A DNA stretch of 64,000 bases from Oculina patagonica (Eukaryota): assembly GCF_052425735.1 (NCBI RefSeq), contig NC_135761.1, positions 57,598,001 through 57,662,000 of the forward strand, read 5' to 3'. The position numbers and the translations under genes were made by a program. The notes below the pieces were generated by a model. The model was given only the letters and a program-made list of their open reading frames with translations, searched no databases and had not been told where the DNA came from. Shown here in pieces: positions 41,826 to 52,306 of this stretch; the first letter of the stretch is position 1; the number at the start of each line of letters is the position of its first letter.

Positions 41826-41893
41826 CGAACGTCATTTTAATAGGCGAATCCCCCAGGCGGGATCGAGGTTTTTGATCCCTTTTTTATTTTCAA

Positions 41894-44800
41894 CTAACCT
41901 ACAATTTTAAAACGCTGATTCCTATATCTAGAACTTATATGTGTAAAGAAACAGCGCCGATCTCTATTGTCTGTACAGATTAGAGACAAGTTATGGTCAC
42001 TGCAGTTGCTAGTTACTCCTAGATACAAATTAGTAAGCTTATGTTTATATGTAACATATGTAAATTTTCCATCATTATTCTTCTCTTCATAAAACAGGAA
42101 AGCATCAACAGCTGAAGGGCCACAATGATGTCTCTGTAAATGCAATGGAAACATTGAAAATCAAACAATAATAGGCCTTATGCATGATAACGTCATAAGC
42201 TAACCGCGATCAGGCGCCCCCGCGGAAAAAGAAAGCCTGATCGCAGGTTACATAAGCTCAAAATTCACCACCAAGCCTCGTTTACGAAAGTTATTCGCAA
42301 CCTTTCGCCACCTTCATGCAATTTTCACGTGGGTATTCTTTTCTTCTTTGCTGCTTTGGGAATTCGTTCATGATGATATTCACAAGTTTACACTTTGAAA
42401 GCGAGGCTTGGCGGTGAAACTAGCAAGTCTGACGTAAACATGCATAAGGGCTATTCAACATACATTCTCTGAACAATAAATTTGCCAAGCAGAACTGTTA
42501 CATGTTCTAGTGCCATTGAATCGAATATCAAGCCAGTCATCAGTTAAATTATTTGGCGATTTCTCAGCGTATCTGTTAAAATTTCAACCCGTACAGTAAA
42601 TTTTGACCAATTTTCAGCTATAATTTTAACCAGGTCAATTTTATTTTATATTTAACAATATATAATCTACAGGCCACAGAGGGAAGATCAGTCCTACTTG
42701 TGATAAAACTTTCTCGAAACTTTCGGTAAAAGAAAACAATGATTCAACAAACAAAATCTCTCTTTACCAAGTAAATTGTTACATTTTACTTGTTTCCATT
42801 GAATCGAAGATCAAATTGGTGGATTGCCGAGTCAATTTTTATTAAATTATAAACAGGTCACAAAAGAAAGACCTTAATTTTCAAAGAAACATACGGTAAA
42901 TTATATTGACCGGACTGTTTCGACTTGCTTTAACTTTAAATTAACTTTTTTTAAAGCAGGTATAATTGTATTGGAGTTCATTGCAAATAGACACTCAGGT
43001 TTAAGGTCTCCGCACACGCGGGGACAAGGCGCAGGGACATGTCCCAGCGACATGTAGCAGCGACAAATCATTTGTTTAGGGCCTAGCTGATTACATGAGC
43101 CGGGCTGGCTCGGTTGGCCTTCAGCCCGGTATTACATGAGCCCGGTTAGCCGCGCTGGCGGTGCCGAGATGACCAGCCCGGTTCAGTACGAATAATCAGA
43201 GCACGAATGATCTTGATCACCTTTTTCCGGGAATTTGGTGGTAAGTTGCACATGCAGCTGGATGGTACTACCTCACACCAGAAGGAGTAGCATTGATTTT
43301 CGTCCGAATTGGGCCGGAGAGAAATTTAGCTGGCCCGCTAGCCGGGCTGGCCCGGGAACCGGCTAACCGGGCTGGCCCGGTGTCATGTAATCGCGAAGTT
43401 GATTTTTGTTGCGTTAACAGACGTGCCGAGATCTCGGCAAACCGAGCCAGCCCGGCTAACCGGGCCAGCCCGGCTCATGAAGGGACATGAAGCAGGGGGT
43501 GTAGCGGGGACATGTAGCAGGACAAAGTCACAATATGTGCACACGCAAGAAAATGTATCGGGGACATCATGTCGCTGCGACATGTCCCTGGGTCTTGTCC
43601 CCACGTGTGCGGAGACCTTAATTAACTCACCTCAAATGTGATGCCATTTTCCTCGTTGACTTTCAGCGCATACCTTTTATAACCGTCTAGCTCATCAGTG
43701 AACTGAATACACTTGGTATCCTTTCCTTTGACCTTCTTTATAGTAAATCCTTTGAGTTATCAAATACACAATTACTGAAAACTGCTGGAAACAGTTCGGT
43801 TGTTGAAATTCAACTAACCCGCCTGCCATCAGGCGGCGACGGAAGATAGGAAAAAGGCGAACTCCAGAAAGCAAACTTTAAAAAGGTGCACTACTTACTC
43901 GTTTTAGGGTTTCTTGTAAAACGACCATTGCATTTAGCCTGAGGTCGCCCGCCGATAATGTGAATCTTTAGGAGATTTCCTCTGCATCCACTTTCTAGCC
44001 TATAAAATGACTGAAGGCTGACAGGAGATGCATTTCTCTTCCAGCTTGATCGGACTTCAACACGTGCAAGCAAGCAAGCCACCACGCTCTACCGATAAAA
44101 AGTGATTTGTGATTGAGATCAGAACCATAACTAAAAAGTCTAAAAAAGTCAGGGACCCTGCGGAAAGCGTAACGTTCTTCAGTTATAGTAGGGAACAGAA
44201 TACAGGACGTAACGCTACGAAACAAATAAAACTGTCTAAATTAATAAGAAAAGGAAGGACTCTTGAGTTGACATGCAAAATAGAAGACAAGCTTAAGTAG
44301 AAGACAAAAAATTATAAACCATATCATATGTATCATTCAGTAGAACCCCGATATAACTGCAGTATGCCAAGGGAGCAATAAAATAATATCGTTATATTGA
44401 GAAATCGTTATATCGAAACTCCCGATATAACGATATGGCCGTAAAATAGCCGAAAATATCGTTATATAGGGGTTGACCTAACTTGAACTTTTTTACTGCG
44501 TATTATGATCACAAAATTTACAAATGTAACGATTTAAGCACGCATATCATAGTACAAATTAAAGCTGTTGACAGAAACGTAAGAGATGACTCGATTTCAT
44601 ATACTGTCATGTTATTATATTAAATTCAATGTTTTGCTTAAATTGTGACTCTGTACTGACAATATCGTTATATCGAGAAAGATTTTACGTTAGGTCCGCT
44701 AAATTCTCATCGTTATGTCGGGAATATCGCCATATCATATCGAAGATCGTTATATCGGAGTTCTATAACTTTTGCTAGGACATAGAATATTCATCGTTAT

Positions 44801-45126
44801 ACCAGGAATCTTATCGATATATATCGAATATCGTTATATCGGGGTTCCACTGTACTAGGCCCGGAGACGCCGACTGAGCCGAACCGAGGACCAAGACAAG
44901 ACGCCGGACAGACGCGACTGGCCGCGAGCCGCCAACAGCCAAAACCAGCAAAAACAAAAGAAAGGACGACGAAAAGAGGCGCGAACGCCGCAGGCGCCAC
45001 AGGGAACCGGCCAGCCAGGCGGAACGGCGAAGCCGCAGACAGACGCCGACCTGAAAGGAAGCGGCCGAAAAGACGGCGCGAACCGGGCCTAATATTTCTT
45101 ACTAGAAAAATGTGGGTCAAGTCCAT
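41894..45126 (-). CDS. Secreted beta-trefoil-like (FGF/IL-1-like) protein, paralogue A, 4 exons, 190 aa
   Basis: Exons 45126-45103, 44088-43899, 43749-43631, 42133-41894 (GT-AG; phases 0, 1, 0). Protein: MDLTHIFLSVVACLLARVEVRSSWKRNASPVSLQSFYRLESGCRGNLLKIHIIGGRPQAKCNGRFTRNPKTRFTIKKVKGKDTKCIQFTDELDGYKRYALKVNEENGITFERHHCGPSAVDAFLFYEEKNNDGKFTYVTYKHKLTNLYLGVTSNCSDHNLSLICTDNRDRRCFFTHISSRYRNQRFKIVG. The gene model is supported by matching exon sizes (24/190/119) and a conserved frame in paralogue B. The fold call is inference from motifs. Confidence 0.8.
43005..43617. mobile_element. TTAA-flanked MITE containing a second GC-rich MITE (~43078-43480), in intron 3 of paralogue A
   Basis: TIR GGTCTCCGCACACG.GGGGACAAG; TTAA on both sides; absent from the equivalent intron of paralogue B; inner element has CCGGGCTGGCCCGG repeats. 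Confidence 0.8.
44338..44852. mobile_element. Tc1/mariner (pogo/Tigger-like) MITE in intron 1 of paralogue A
   Basis: CAGTAGAACCCCGATATAAC ... GTTATATCGGGGTTCCACTG-TA with internal TCGTTATATCG repeats; sister copy at 55698-56062. Confidence 0.8.
44858..45089. mobile_element. Small GC-rich insertion with short TIR and TA TSD
   Basis: TA-GGCCCGG...CCGGGCC-TA; the empty site (actaatatttcttac) is seen in paralogue B intron 1. Confidence 0.65.
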
Positions 45127-45193
45127 TCAGTCCACTCTTTTCCAACTCCTTTCTGCAGATGAATAACTACAAAAGTTTTAGAGCGAAGTTCTT

Positions 45194-45203
45194 TTTATTT
45201 ATA
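45194..45203 (-). promoter_or_regulatory. TATA box of paralogue A
   Basis: TATAAATAAA ~70 bp upstream of the ATG; conserved at the same spacing in paralogue B. Confidence 0.65.
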
Positions 45204-46327
45204 CCGTTATTTGTTTAATTTTGTTTGCACTATTAATTTATTTCCAAAACATTACATACTAGCATAAAGTATTTATCTTTTACTTACTGAAGCATTGAAA
45301 TTTATAGTGAGTGGGAGTTTATATTGTTAAATAACGAGTGTATAAAAGCATCTGGAATTTAAACTTCTCTTGATATATTAATAGTAATTTTTCTGGTTCC
45401 CCCAGCCCAGCCCTATGCACTCCACGACCCCTTGAGATAAATCGACAGAAAAAAATACTTCTTCCTGATCAAATCTATTCAGGAGTTACTGCAATAAAAA
45501 CAGTGAACACTGAGCATTCGATTCTGAGGTAACTAAACTGAATAAATTAACTATACGGCACTAATGAGATCAGCGTGAAGCAAGTGGAACGAACCATTGA
45601 AATACCGGAAGTGCGGGGGGAGACACAACACTTCCGGTAATCTCTGAACCATGTACACTCAAAAGATTTAACGTGAAAGCGGAAAATTACTTAGTCTCGT
45701 ATATTCTACCTTGGGCAAAGTAGCGTTCTCTGCAACAGATAAATTCTTCACTTTTATTCAAAAATTATAGTTTATGTTAACAGCCACATGCGTTGGCGAC
45801 ACTTCAAGTATTTCTCTACCGTTCTCTGCAATAATAAAAATGTACTTCTTACTTCTCGAATAGAACAAACAACTCATACAGTAAACACCCGCATATAAGA
45901 ACAAATGGATAAGAACACAGGGAAATTGCCAATAGCCCCATTTTTATAAGAACAAGACAGCCTGAAAATCAGCTCTAAAACTGGAAGGTGAATACATAAA
46001 AAAACAAGTGATTATCACTACCTATAATGAAGGACAGCCAGCATCTCATCAGCAGATGCAGATGATTGGACAAAAAAAAGAAATTTATTAATTTATGCTT
46101 ATTTTACATCAAGGGGTATTTTTGGGTAGTATTACTAATATAGAAATTTAAGAACATTTTAAGAACACTTTTATAATAGCAACTTGCCATTAGCTCAACC
46201 CCAGTGAAATATGTAATAGCATAGGTTGCGTGACATATTAAATGGAACGTAGAGTGAAGACGGAAGTTCTCTAACTTCCGACAAGGACTGATACACTAGC
46301 TTGGAACTTGGTTATACGGAGCAATAT

Positions 46328-46554
46328 AAGGGGCATCGAATGATCTTTGCGAGCACGAGTATTGACAAAAGTTAGCCTTGGGAGCAACAAGCACATTTCA
46401 AAATCTACCTCCACTAAAAACCGAGTATGGGACCGATTGTAAAAATATCCGAGCGCGAGAAAAGATACACCCAGTAAAATTAAATTGCGAGCATTCCAAG
46501 CAGAAGCCTAAGTTTGCGAGCAATGCAAATTTTGGGGACCACTCATGACCCCTA
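46328..46554. mobile_element. MITE family with TGCGAGCA repeats (copies also at ~56070-56305 and ~57700-57929)
   Basis: Shared ends aagggg.atc.aatg.tct..gcgagca ... c.a.tcatgac.cct and mutual similarity among three copies. Confidence 0.65.
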
Positions 46555-47713
46555 AAAAAAGCTAACAACGTACATTTATTTTTATTTTTAATTAGCTTAA
46601 CTCACAACAATTTTAAGTAGCGCGCTTTTCAGGCGTGGGCCTAAGTGGGAGCGCCCACTCAGGCCCACGCCTGAAAAGCAATCTAGAAGAGGCCGAAACA
46701 TTTTTCATGCGGATATCTTTCAATCAACACCGGTCCCTTCTGTCTGAAATCGTCAGGGTGTGGGGGGGGGATGTTTTTTTTTTTTTTTTGCCCCCCCCCC
46801 CCGGAGTGTGGCTGCTTTAATAATATTTTCGCAGAGTTCTTTGCTTCAGATGCGCTCTCTTCACCTTACACTTTCGAATAAAAGAAGACCTCGGCTTCAA
46901 AGTTCGATTTTGTGGAAGGCTTTTGTATCTCAAAATGATTTTGAATGACCTCAGCGAAAAACAGATAGGTGGAACATGCATCTTCTCCTCAATGCTCGAT
47001 GGTTTTCCCATTTTATAAGCGATGTCGAAACGTGTGAAATTTCCAACCTCGTCCTCAGGGCCGCCTGCGTTTTCAAGATGGCGGACGGATATCTTGCGCC
47101 CGCGAGGTTGTTAAATTACTCAACCAAAGAACTGACGACCAAGAACCGGAAAATGTTTGAGAGCACTGCAGTATCGAGTTCATAACAAAAGTATTCACTC
47201 AGTTTTTGACAGTTTTTAAGTCCTCTTCCTTTTTCTCAAGTTCAACGTTTCAAAAAGGATTTAAGTGTTTCCGGGGGCCCCGCCGTCATGTTAGAATAAA
47301 ACTGAAATTGAAGGGATCATTTTAAGCGGAAAACAAACGAACAACGAGATGAACATGATTCTTATCTCTGTATTTGCAATTGTAAAGTTGGCCGAAAACC
47401 TATCAAATGGAAACGACTAATAAACTTACTTACTTACTGATATAAATGTATCTACATTCAATGCACGAAAAGCTATAATCATTCAACTAATCATAATTTA
47501 ACACGCAACTATCAACAAAGTTTGTTTGGTGATACACAGTATCTTATTCCACGTTGTCGCTTCCTAGTTATCGCTTGACGTAAGAGAGGCCTGGGAAAGA
47601 GTACTTAGGCGATTTGGATCAATGTCGGCTATAAAGGGAGGTGGACATCTGACGATAAATTATACCACATGATTAGTTTGTTAGCACAAGCGGCCTTTTA
47701 GTCGAGTCTTCTG

Positions 47714-47920
47714 NNNNNNNNNNNNNNNNNNNNNNNNNNNNNNNNNNNNNNNNNNNNNNNNNNNNNNNNNNNNNNNNNNNNNNNNNNNNNNNNNNNNNNN
47801 NNNNNNNNNNNNNNNNNNNNNNNNNNNNNNNNNNNNNNNNNNNNNNNNNNNNNNNNNNNNNNNNNNNNNNNNNNNNNNNNNNNNNNNNNNNNNNNNNNNN
47901 NNNNNNNNNNNNNNNNNNNN
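47714..47920. other. Assembly gap (207 N)
   Basis: Run of n characters. Confidence 1.
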
Positions 47921-49451
47921 GAAATGAACCGACCAAATCAACCTAGCACAGAGGACAACTCCTTTGTTTGAGGGTCAATGGGGTAATGGCTTTTACAGTA
48001 AACGGTCAAAAATTTTGGCTTTTTAAGGCTAACGGTCGATTTCGTTTTGTTACGGTTAATGATAATTTTAATAATTAATTTCTATTGTTTTAAAAAGTAA
48101 CAAAAATTTCAATTGTTGTATCGATAAGCTGTGTTCTTTCTTGACTTTGTCCTGGCCTTTTATGTCCCCTTTTATCTTTCTATGGGCTTTTCCTCTCGAA
48201 CGTGATATTTACTTATTAAAGTTCCCAATATAACCATAATAAACTAGTCAAGAGACTGAAAAAGGCCTTGAAAAAAGAATCTTGAGACGTTCACTTTGAA
48301 ACGATCATAATATCGTGCCATTAATGGCAAGATAATATGATCGTTTCAAAGTGTTTATTTCAAAAATAGGTAAATTAAGAACATCTGTAAACATAACTTG
48401 AAACCAACTGCCCTTTATTCAACAAACTACAGATACCCTTTATTACGCAAACCATGTATGGTATATCTCTCGGAAACCTCTTATAAGTACCTAAAATCTT
48501 CACATTTTTTAGGACATTAATTGCATAAAGTTAAAAAAACTCTATTACATACGTTACTGTTAATGTAAAAAAAACTCTATTACATACGTTACATTGTACA
48601 TGTTAATTTGTGCACTTTTTTTACAAAAAGTTTACTTGTCTACCTTACAAAATATGACTGGCACAACCTTCGACCAGCCATTGACCAATAGTCTACTATT
48701 AACCGTTACTGAACAGTCACCGCACTGAAACCTCAACTACAATTGCAACTGCCTGGAATGTAACCCATACTAAAACTTCTTACCCGAAGAAATATCAATG
48801 ATTATAAAAGTATTATCACTCACTCAGTGAGGAGACAAGATAAAAACAAAAAGCACTAGACAATTAATTACCCATCTAGACAGGCCATCTGAATGCGCAA
48901 GATGACCTGTCTTAAAATTACAATTTCTATAAACTTAACCCTTACAATTTACTATTATTTGTATTCTCACCAACTCATACAGTCCAAGTAGCGCATTTTT
49001 TCCGCCCCAAAAAAATAGCACTTGCACGCGTTGCGTACCTATGTTCTTTTTCAGTGGACTGAAGGAGCGGACTTAATCGGCCGCCTCCTCTAAAATTCTG
49101 ACAACCTTTTCCCAGCTGAAGCCCGTCGGCTACAAACCTAGATCCCAGCAGGCCCCTTTCCCTTTTCCTCCCGTGTTACTTTTGTTGAGGGCATTCCCGT
49201 CCCTAGAGCCGCTTGTCCCTCGATCAATTAGCCAGCGAGGCTTAAAAAAAAAAAAAAAGCCAGCGAGGCCTGACACGAGAAACAAGTGGCTCTGGCCAGA
49301 CACATGATTTGATTGGCTGGATTTTAACAAAAGGAACAGCTCGTGGACAAGAATGCGTTGAGGGAGAAAAAAGAGAAAGAGCCCTAGGATCGAGGCAGGG
49401 GGATCGAGGTAATAACTCAACCAACGGAACATCCTACTTTCTCAAAACATT

Positions 49452-51544
49452 TTAAAAAGGCTGAATACTACGTTGATTACGTTTGCGCATTTTCTTAAAG
49501 AAACGGCAACGTCGATCTTCACTGTTTGAGCAGATTAAAGACAAGTTATGGTCACTGCAGTTGCTAGTTACTCCTAGGTACAAATTAGTAACCTTATGTT
49601 TATATGTAACGTATGTAAATTTTCCATCACTATTCTTCTCTTCGTAAAACAGGAAAGCATCAACAGTTGAGGGGCCACATTGATGTCTCTGTGAATGCAA
49701 CGGAAACATTTGATTCAACGCACATTCTCTGCACAAAAAAAAAATTGTTTTCACTATAGTTTGTAAATAGAAACTTAGGTTCAATGTTTAAATCCACTTC
49801 AAAAGTGAATGTATTTGTCCCGCAGCTGAGTTTGGGGTTAAAATAATATGGAAATTAATCTTGCGGAAATAAACTTCATGGGTCGATAATTTCTCACAAT
49901 ACGTTAAACAAAACAATGATTCAACAAACAAAATCTTTCATTACCAAGCAGAAATGGTACATATACTTGCTTTCACTGAATCAAAGAACGAACTGGTTAA
50001 TTGGCCGAGTCAATTGTTATAAAAATAATCAACAGGTCACAAAAGAAAGACCTATTTTTAACGAAACGTCGGGTTAATTATATTGACCAGACTGTTTTCA
50101 CTTGCTCTAACTTTTCAAATTAACTTTCTTATGGCAACCATCGTTATATTCAAGTCGTTCAGTTGCAAATAAAAAACTTAGTTGCTTTAACTCACCTCAA
50201 ATGTAATCCCACTTGTCCGGTTGAACTTCAGCGCATACATTTTATTATTGTCTTGTTCATCGGTGTATAGAATGCACTTGATATTCTTTCCTTTGCTTTT
50301 CATTAACGTAAATCCTTTGAGAAACAAAATACACCATTATTAAAAACTTCTGAAAACAATTCCGTTAAAATTTAACAGACTCGCCGTCAGGTGGCGACAG
50401 AAAAGAAGGAAAAAGAAACGTTTTTCTTCGGTCTCTTACTGACTTGCTTATAATTAACAAAAAGAACATAACGTTATTTCCGGAAATCCCGTTTTCCGTT
50501 TATATTAAGCCACGAACGGCAACCGGAAGTGGAACGTTCTCTTCTTTGGCGCGTGTTATAAGCGACTTTTTGTTCATAAATTCAATTTGTAATTGCTAAA
50601 ACGAAGGCTTTCCAACAAAGTTTTGGAGGTAAAAGTTCGCCAAAAACATAAACAGGCGCCTTTCGGTTGCTATCTGTTGCGCAAAAACGTCTGTGCTCTC
50701 TAAAAAATTGGATTTATGGCGAACTCGAGAAAGCAAACTTTTTAAATCTCTGGATTCCCTGAAAGAAGCGCGACAACATCATTTGGCATAACTGTACTAA
50801 AACGATATCAATCTGATCAGATTTGCTTTAGATGACCTTTGTTCCTAAGGCCGCAATATATTATTATGTTCTGAAGTAATACAAATTCTTTACCACTAGC
50901 TCGATACTTTTAATCTCTCTATTTTTTAAAAAACAGAGTATTTTTCTTGCAACTGGCTTACATGGGTGTTCCTAAAGAAACGATTGAAAGATGCTGCTAA
51001 ATTGGAAAGTAAAGACCCTCTCGATACTTTAGAACTTTATTTGGTTATAAGGTACCGCACTACTTACTCGTTTTGGCGTTTCTCGTAAAACGACCACTGC
51101 ATTTGGCCTGAGCTCGCTCGCCGTCAATGTGAATCTTGAGGAGATTTCCTCTACATCCTTTTCCTAGTCTGTAAAATGACTGAAGGCTGACAGGAGATGT
51201 AGTTCTCTTCCAGCTTGATCCGACTTCAACATGTGCCAGCAAGCAAGCCACCACGATCTACCGATAAAAAGTGATTTGTGATTGAGATGAGCCATAAACA
51301 AGAAATACCTGGGACCCTGCGGAAAGGGTAACGTTTTTCAGTTATAGTAGGGAACAGTATACAGGACGTAACGCTCCGAAACAGATAAAACTGTCTAAAT
51401 TAATGAGAAAAGGAAGGACTCTTCAGTTAACAAAATAGAGGGAAGTGTTTGAGAGTAGAAGACAAAAAACAGGTAATCATATCTAACATTGCAATAACCC
51501 TTAGCACTAATATTTCTTACTAGAAAAATATGGGTTAAGTCCAT
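49452..51544 (-). CDS. Secreted beta-trefoil-like (FGF/IL-1-like) protein, paralogue B, 4 exons, 189 aa
   Basis: Exons 51544-51521, 51257-51068, 50314-50196, 49688-49452 (GT-AG; phases 0, 1, 0). Protein: MDLTHIFLIVVACLLAHVEVGSSWKRTTSPVSLQSFYRLGKGCRGNLLKIHIDGERAQAKCSGRFTRNAKTRFTLMKSKGKNIKCILYTDEQDNNKMYALKFNRTSGITFERHQCGPSTVDAFLFYEEKNSDGKFTYVTYKHKVTNLYLGVTSNCSDHNLSLICSNSEDRRCRFFKKMRKRNQRSIQPF. Confidence 0.8.
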
Positions 51545-51612
51545 TTTGTCCACTTCTTTTTCAGCTATATTTCTCCAGATGAATAACTATAAAAGTTTCA
51601 GAGCGAAGTTCT

Positions 51613-51622
51613 TTTATTTATA
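51613..51622 (-). promoter_or_regulatory. TATA box of paralogue B
   Basis: TATAAATAAA, same spacing to the ATG as in paralogue A. Confidence 0.65.
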
Positions 51623-52306
51623 CCATTATTTGTTTAATTTTATTTGCAGTATAATTGATTAAAAATGAAAGGAATTTAATTCGTCTAACGCCTTTTAATC
51701 ATGAACATTACATAGTAGCTTAAAGTATGTATCTTTTAACTACCGTAGCTTTGAAATGTATACTGAGTGGGAGTAATATATATTGTTTTTAAATAACAAG
51801 TGTGTAAAAGTAGCTGGAAGTTAAACTTCTCTTGACAATATTAATACTGATTTGTCTGGACCCCCACCCCCACCCCTCGACCACTTGAAATAAATCGACA
51901 AACAAAAAACTTCTTACTGATTGAAACAATTTAGGAGTTATTGCAATAACTGATCTTTCGATCTCTACATCTACTGAAGTAACTGAACTGGAAAAAATTA
52001 ATTTTACGGCAATAATAAGATCAGCGTGAAGCAAGTACGTGGAACAAACCTTTCAAATACCGGAAGTGCGGGGGATTGCATGACACTTCCGGTAGATCTG
52101 TGATTCATGTACACGCAAAAGATTCTACGTGGAAATGATGCAGAAAATAACTTAGTCTCGTATATTGTACAAATACTCAGTTGTTTCACGGTAGTGCAAA
52201 CAACAGCATTTGGATGATCGCCCATACATGCGGCTGTTTACAAAAGTGTCAAACAATTTAATAACGTGTTTAATTTTGTCCGAGATTGAATGAGGGCGTT
52301 CAGAAT

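Follow-up and report, generated by a model that had tools for sequence, protein, structure and literature searches.

The window studied here is a 64,000-nt stretch of the chromosome-scale contig C4 of the 529-Mb Oculina patagonica assembly (C4:57,598,001-57,662,000). It carries a tandem pair of small genes, g1 and g2, that belong to an undescribed family of coral proteins with a predicted signal peptide and a predicted beta-trefoil fold. The most likely explanation, to which we give a probability of about 0.55, is that this family is a far-diverged offshoot of the FGF-type, or cytokine-type, trefoil lineage and that its products serve as extracellular ligands or binding proteins. This reading is drawn from the intron positions and phases, which are those of canonical FGF genes. 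The data place it neither in the IL-1 family nor in the Pfam FGF family.

Structure of g1 and g2

We rebuilt both genes from the sequence. They are co-oriented on the minus strand, intact and identical in architecture, with four exons each (g1, 41894-45126; g2, 49452-51544), and encode products of 190 aa (g1) and 189 aa (g2). All six introns are GT..AG with phases 0, 1 and 0, and the donors are good (GTAAGA, GTAAGT and GTGAGT). Over ~370 nt, the regions upstream of the two genes share 81-87% identity. The first-pass annotation, made from the letters of the window, had described two intact tandem four-exon genes, and the rebuilt models agree with it. The parts of the two genes are as follows.

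45198-45203, minus strand: TATA box of g1 (TATAAA), 77 nt upstream of the ATG; the same box lies at nearly the same distance in g2
45103-45126, minus strand: g1 exon 1, 24 nt (MDLTHIFL); donor GTAAGA, phase 0
43899-44088, minus strand: g1 exon 2, 190 nt; remaining signal peptide, SSWKR and trefoil strands 1-3; next intron phase 1
43631-43749, minus strand: g1 exon 3, 119 nt; trefoil strands 4-7; next intron phase 0
41894-42133, minus strand: g1 exon 4, 240 nt with the stop codon; encodes strands 8-12 of the trefoil and the basic tail
41883-41888, minus strand: polyadenylation signal of g1 (AATAAA), 5 nt past the stop codon
51617-51622, minus strand: TATA box of g2 (TATAAA), 78 nt upstream of the ATG
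51521-51544, minus strand: g2 exon 1, 24 nt (MDLTHIFL); rebuilt model
51068-51257, minus strand: g2 exon 2, 190 nt; model, with the exon 2-3 junction in contigs of runs X25, X27 and X28
50196-50314, minus strand: g2 exon 3, 119 nt; model and spliced contigs
49452-49688, minus strand: g2 exon 4 including the stop; model, with the junction 49688|50196 in the X27 contig
49307-49451, minus strand: 3′ untranslated region (3′UTR) of g2, 145 nt or more; extent taken from the spliced X27 contig

The N-terminus of both proteins is a hydrophobic signal-like leader (MDLTHIFL|xVVACLLAxVEV), and SSWKR comes next. Seven cysteines lie in the mature part, NCS and NLS sequons occur in both proteins, and the C-terminal tail is rich in lysine and arginine (isoelectric point, pI, 9.8-10.0). 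These features, together with the TATA box and the 24-nt first exon, had all been listed before and are present in the rebuilt genes.

Intron positions shared with FGF genes

To place the introns on the fold, we used the structure model described below. Strand 4 comprises model residues 60-65, and the phase-1 intron lies directly in front of it, at residue 59. Strand 7 comprises residues 91-96, and the phase-0 intron lies at its end, between residues 95 and 96. The middle exon of the family, 110 nt on contig C7 and 119 nt in the window, therefore covers model residues 60-95, which are strands 4-7.

Five canonical FGF genes of the same genome were resolved for comparison. Each has a phase-1 intron, a 104-nt exon and a phase-0 intron. 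The 104-nt exon encodes strands 4 to 7, opening with “AKLVIES...” and closing with “...GRLRAR”. The earlier statement that FGF genes have a phase-1 and then a phase-0 intron was thus verified in this coral, and g1 and g2 are alike in this respect. The two middle exons differ in length, 110-119 nt in the family versus 104 nt in the FGFs. The same phases at structurally equivalent positions, for two introns, are unlikely by chance. The pattern is therefore moderate evidence of ancestry shared with FGF-type trefoil genes, and it is the single positive link of the family to FGF. To judge by the IL1B gene, IL-1 probably shares the phase-1/phase-0 pattern. The paper that described the invertebrate IL-1 homologue IL-1anc states that intron phasing is conserved within IL-1 and nothing further on this point (PMC13736523).

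Fold of the family

The structure model is that of the closest full-length homologue, residues 43-201 of P0008 from Desmophyllum pertusum, and not of g1 or g2 themselves. P0008 is 46-47% identical to the window proteins over 175-178 aa (E 1e-37 to 1e-39). Family members and exon translations made up the 72 rows of the alignment used for modeling. The model has a predicted local distance difference test score (pLDDT) of 90.6, a predicted template modeling score (pTM) of 0.86 and twelve strands. According to this model, the family fold is a single 12-strand beta-trefoil with three four-strand units, as had been proposed.

All structural searches with the model returned beta-trefoils only, and no superfamily stood out. 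Foldseek against the PDB listed HA17/HA33, ThreeFoil, IL-18, Symfoil, Tpp/BinA, FGF12 and FGF10 (E 1e-5 to 4e-4, TM-score 0.58-0.69). The search of AFDB Swiss-Prot gave the same mixture of trefoils, with IL-18 at a TM-score of ~0.65. In the AFDB clusters the top match was a Pocillopora member of the family (TM-score 0.82), followed by bacterial ricin-B/CBM13 domains, which indicates that the family forms a cluster of its own. ESM Atlas returned ricin-type domains with TM-scores of 0.70-0.73. Taken over all searches, the best matches were ricin-B-type (HA17/HA33, CBM13) and fascin trefoils, tied with FGF1. Judged by the refutation criterion of the first-pass annotation itself, the structural comparison did not favor cytokine trefoils. 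Two other trefoil groups were considered. The reading as a Kunitz-STI inhibitor was dropped because no STI chains were among the top structural matches, and no mytilectin structure (PMC10744619) was among them either.

The family in Oculina and other corals

With the last exon of g1 as query, we found 12 further last exons on contig C7. A full-length family profile searched against the genome gave ~19 loci on C7 (23.65-24.64 Mb), the window pair on C4 and one copy on C705. The family in Oculina patagonica therefore has at least 21 loci, the pair on C4 and an array of ~19 on C7. The C705 copy (C705:161-570, minus strand) lies on a small unplaced contig and consists of g1-like exons 2 and 3 with scores almost equal to those of g1. 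It is probably an uncollapsed haplotig.

We examined 14 of the C7 loci and rebuilt most of them; nine are complete open frames. The rebuilt paralogs have the same four exons and phases as g1 and g2, with a third exon of 110 nt. Cysteine is conserved in eight alignment columns of the family. In g1 and g2 two of them, which form a loop pair, are missing, and one additional cysteine is present. Most members have 6-9 cysteines, and the pI of the family is 9.6-10.4.

An exhaustive HMMER search with a last-exon profile against 1.84 billion representatives gave 53 matches at E≤1e-3. We looked up 30 of these, and 20 of the 30 were unnamed metagenome or transcriptome open reading frames (ORFs). Named homologues among the 30 came from scleractinians only: Oculina patagonica, Desmophyllum pertusum, Pocillopora damicornis, P. 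verrucosa and P. meandrina. All named entries are labeled “hypothetical” or “uncharacterized”, and a literature search by gene and protein accessions found no paper. The Desmophyllum and Pocillopora loci keep the exon structure of g1 and g2. The family is thus undescribed, and its named members are from stony corals only.

Expression and selection

Contigs of four public runs were placed on 49300-51700, the g2 span. A 721-nt contig of X27 aligned with 49307-49688, then 50196-50314 and then 51085-51259, with 28 nt more. At the 3′ end of g2 exon 2 this contig has 17 other letters in place of the 17 bases of the window, which suggests an allele or ortholog and not another splice form. A contig of X28 has the same exon 2-3 junction as X27. 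The junction in a contig of X25, 50313|51067, amounts to the same join as 50314|51068. The spliced form of g2 is thus carried by three runs from three studies, and the junctions are exactly those predicted from the sequence. We conclude that spliced g2 mRNA exists and that g2 is transcribed and spliced. For g1, some public runs contain 7-10% of the words of its span, a value that is compatible with exon-only coverage and is no proof of transcription.

A 40-nt stretch within 49300-49341, just past the g2 3′UTR, recurs in numerous contigs with high coverage in each of the four runs (summed depth 175-713). It either is dispersed in the genome as a repeat or belongs to an abundant transcript.

Between g1 and g2 the nonsynonymous rate (dN) is 0.168 and the synonymous rate (dS) is 0.382, a ratio of 0.44. 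Across the family dN/dS is 0.15-0.57. These ratios indicate purifying selection, not decay. Together with the ~19 paralogs of the same structure and the homologues in other corals, they show that g1 and g2 are more than chance reading frames.

Gap, repeats and public annotation at the locus

Two further features lie within or between the genes.

47714-47920, no strand: assembly gap (N), intergenic between g1 and g2; touches no exon
43001-43621, no strand: insertion resembling a miniature inverted-repeat transposable element (MITE), located in g1 intron 3; terminal inverted repeats of 54 nt, each end marked by TTAA

In the direction of transcription, the g1 TATA box lies ~2.5 kb downstream of the gap, and the last g2 3′UTR base that RNA contigs cover (49307) lies ~1.4 kb upstream of it. 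All exons, junctions and reading frames lie outside the gap, and it affects only the spacing of g1 and g2. The terminal inverted repeats of the MITE-like insertion are 93% complementary, and TTAA is a piggyBac-type target site. The insertion may affect g1 splicing. At the corresponding position g2 carries an empty TTAA site.

Intron 1 of g1 is 1014 nt, compared with 263 nt in g2, and holds runs of “GATATAACGATAT”-like units (44340-45095). This enlarged intron looks like a repeat insertion. A GC-rich block within it (44860-45095) yields a spurious 109-aa ORF in frame with exon 1.

The public GenBank model at the locus, KAL9979357.1 (P0048, 235 aa), is a chimera. It combines g2 exons 2-4, truncated, with g1 exons 2-3 across the gap. 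The protein collection that we searched holds neither the correct 189-aa nor the correct 190-aa product. A word-indexed protein search with g2 exon 4 gave no candidate, which indicates that the correctly spliced window proteins are absent from that collection.

Sequence searches

Pfam searches on single exons and a phmmer search of exon 4 against the PDB gave nothing. PF00167 (FGF) and PF00340 (IL1) had no match even at E≤10 on single exons, on 10 full-length members or on the 72 alignment members. Among PDB sequences, exon-4 and full-length family profiles matched nothing but Dot1, by chance (E 0.4); FGF, IL-1 and lectin chains were not detected. Among the 72 members, Pfam gave one weak match, to RicinB_lectin_2 (E 0.17).

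We also looked for motifs of the candidate families. The (F/L)ES motif in strand 9, which is described for the IL-1 superfamily (PMC13736523), was absent in 20 of 20 members checked, and [FL]ES occurred only twice, elsewhere in the sequence. No PDZ domain was matched by Pfam, and proteins of 189-190 aa with a hydrophobic leader leave no room for one. Of the QxW motif, expected three times in a ricin-B-type lectin, there was one instance (Q.W) in 20 sequences, and no internal sequence repeat was seen.

In the whole genome PF00340 gave two matches only, both on contig C8 and below the cut-off (23-24 bits). They lie at C8:29.74 and 29.99 Mb (L037:4141-4299 and L038:4623-4769, both minus strand). 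We rejected them as an IL-1 gene: the underlying sequence is a repeat, a lysine/arginine-rich open frame that is present in two almost identical copies and lacks a splice donor in its vicinity.

The affinity to IL-1 and IL-18 that had been suggested for the window pair thus did not hold up. There is no PF00340 match, the PDB profile search found no IL-1 chain, and strand 9 has no (F/L)ES. The same suggestion had taken the cysteine of the FGF motif “eC.F.E” as invariant and its absence from g1 and g2 as a sign against FGF. Only 12 of 20 FGF last exons of this coral have this cysteine, so the argument fails.

A TIR receptor gene in the C7 array

The C7 array contains an IL-1R-like gene. ORFs at C7:23,972,032-23,976,934 (L024:2032-6934, plus strand) encode three immunoglobulin (Ig) domains (I-set/ig, E 1e-9 to 1e-13) and a transmembrane (TM)-TIR exon (TIR, E 1e-18). 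This Ig3-TM-TIR gene ends 1.1 kb from a trefoil last exon (L024:8067-8282, minus strand). A second TM-TIR exon (C7:24,598,608-24,599,081) lies ~40 kb from the outlying paralog at 24.64 Mb. The genome holds at least 40 TM-TIR exons, and from this number the chance of finding one in an array of 0.4-1 Mb is roughly 0.03-0.08. TIR and Ig genes were absent from the 64-kb window and from the flanking 10 kb of the two loci examined in Desmophyllum and Pocillopora. We treat the linkage as a lead and not as a finding; it involves the C7 paralogs, not g1 and g2.

In the center of the C7 array there are also several minicollagen-like ORFs (L023:8128-9998 and L016:229-5080, minus strand; C7:23.958-23.965 Mb). 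Their Gly-Pro-Pro repeats have cysteine motifs of the CxxxCxxxCxxxC type on either side, and for one ORF there is a Pfam Collagen match (1.7e-9).

Origin and possible function of the family

If the family is a diverged FGF-type lineage, the acquisition of a signal-peptide exon and of three to four disulfides would be part of its history. After removal of the predicted signal peptide, the mature protein would have ~170 aa and would be secreted, N-glycosylated, disulfide-bonded and strongly basic (pI about 10). The basic surface and the K/R-rich tail may bind acidic glycans and hold the protein on the cell surface or matrix. The trefoil would then engage a surface receptor or glycan.

Several results weigh against this origin. 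Genome-wide, PF00167 found ~20 canonical three-exon FGF genes and no family locus, and the family profile searched against the genome found no FGF locus. Full-length members had no significant family match in Pfam. When family exons were compared by hhalign with the matching exons of this coral's own FGFs, P was 0.049, 0.18 and 0.0075. Two of these matches were in register (C.GGNL.KI with C.nG..L.I, P 0.049; FLF.EE..YK..LGV with C.F.E..Y..LAL, P 0.0075), and that of the middle exon (P 0.18) was out of register. A control with reversed FGF sequences gave P 0.0009, which is better than the true matches, so the hhalign matches are not evidence. Because of this control, we discarded the FGF kinship suggested by hhalign as statistically not significant. 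The full-length profile-profile comparison of the family with FGF gave a probability of 0.4%. FGFs are normally without the three to four disulfides implied in this family, and tandem expansion to ~20 copies is more typical of defense or lectin families than of developmental ligands. The nearest non-family neighbors in the AFDB clusters and ESM Atlas are all ricin-B/CBM13 domains (TM-score 0.61-0.73). The fold comes from a model of the homologue P0008, and secretion, glycosylation, disulfide pairing and any binding partner are all predicted. The MITE-like element starts only 6-9 nt past the g1 exon 3 donor, and the splicing evidence comes from g2.

The structural neighbors lead to the main rival explanation, in which the proteins are secreted carbohydrate-binding lectins or defense effectors of the ricin-B/HA33 type, directed at microbial or symbiont glycans, and the FGF-like introns are a coincidence. 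The best Foldseek matches, HA17/HA33 and ThreeFoil, favor it, as do the ricin-type neighbors just mentioned. The family is also apparently secreted, disulfide-rich, lineage-specific and tandemly expanded, and ricin-B domains (PF00652 and PF14200; botulinum HA33/HA17, CBM13) are likewise extracellular and contain disulfides. However, the coral proteins lack QxW motifs, an internal repeat and a significant Pfam match, and they are stand-alone animal proteins with introns at FGF-type positions. We regard the lectin explanation as possible but somewhat unlikely. That g1, g2 and their relatives are merely divergent members of a described cnidarian FGF subfamily has become very improbable and is close to refuted. 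The intron positions and phases, the basic pI and the weak in-register motifs would fit such membership. Yet PF00167 detects every canonical FGF exon set in the genome and none of the family loci at E≤10, full-length members and the PDB profile search give no FGF match, and profile-profile scores are matched or beaten by the reversed control. The family also differs from FGFs in its eight conserved cysteines, which imply disulfides, in the extra 24-nt first exon, in its tandem expansion and in its occurrence, by named members, in stony corals only.

A third explanation takes the proteins as cytokine-like ligands of the Ig3-TM-TIR receptor, forming a conventionally secreted, coral-specific IL-1-like axis. 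The beta-trefoil fold, with IL-18 among the Foldseek matches (TM-score 0.65), and the two TM-TIR exons near C7 paralogs speak for it, and linkage of IL-1 to IL-1R-like genes has been reported for invertebrate IL-1anc (PMC13736523). The view that IL-1 ligands are restricted to vertebrates, repeated in the first-pass annotation, is outdated, since cnidarian IL-1 homologues of this type were published in 2026; in hexacorals, synteny with TRAF3/GCC2/SOX3/ESD was reported for them (PMC13736523). But cnidarian IL-1anc combines a PDZ domain with the trefoil and has no signal peptide (PMC13736523), whereas the coral family has a predicted classical signal peptide, is rich in cysteines and lacks the PDZ domain, the (F/L)ES motif and a PF00340 match. 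The number of TM-TIR exons in the genome, with the chance probability that follows from it, and the lack of TIR or Ig genes in the window and near the other coral members examined also count against a TIR ligand, and we consider this explanation unlikely. A coral-only trefoil cytokine that arose from a common FGF/IL-1 gene lineage, signals through the Ig3-TM-TIR receptor of its array and is parallel to, and distinct from, the PDZ-containing IL-1anc is likewise doubtful. What remains of the cytokine family first proposed for this locus is an undescribed, apparently secreted, cysteine-rich trefoil family with FGF-type gene structure; its description as an IL-1/IL-18-like cytokine is unsupported.

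Significance

Very few secreted signaling or recognition molecules have been identified in corals outside conserved developmental pathways. The present family has ~21 genes, with spliced transcripts for g2. It has the predicted fold of FGF and IL-1 and the gene structure of FGF, possibly also of IL-1, and it is invisible to Pfam. The public model at the locus is chimeric, so expression or comparative studies that rely on it would overlook the pair. A diverged cytokine-type trefoil would be an example of how ligands of this kind can acquire classical secretion and disulfides; a lectin would be a candidate in the recognition of microbes or symbionts. Either way, the linkage of its array to an IL-1R-like gene provides a concrete ligand-receptor hypothesis in a coral.

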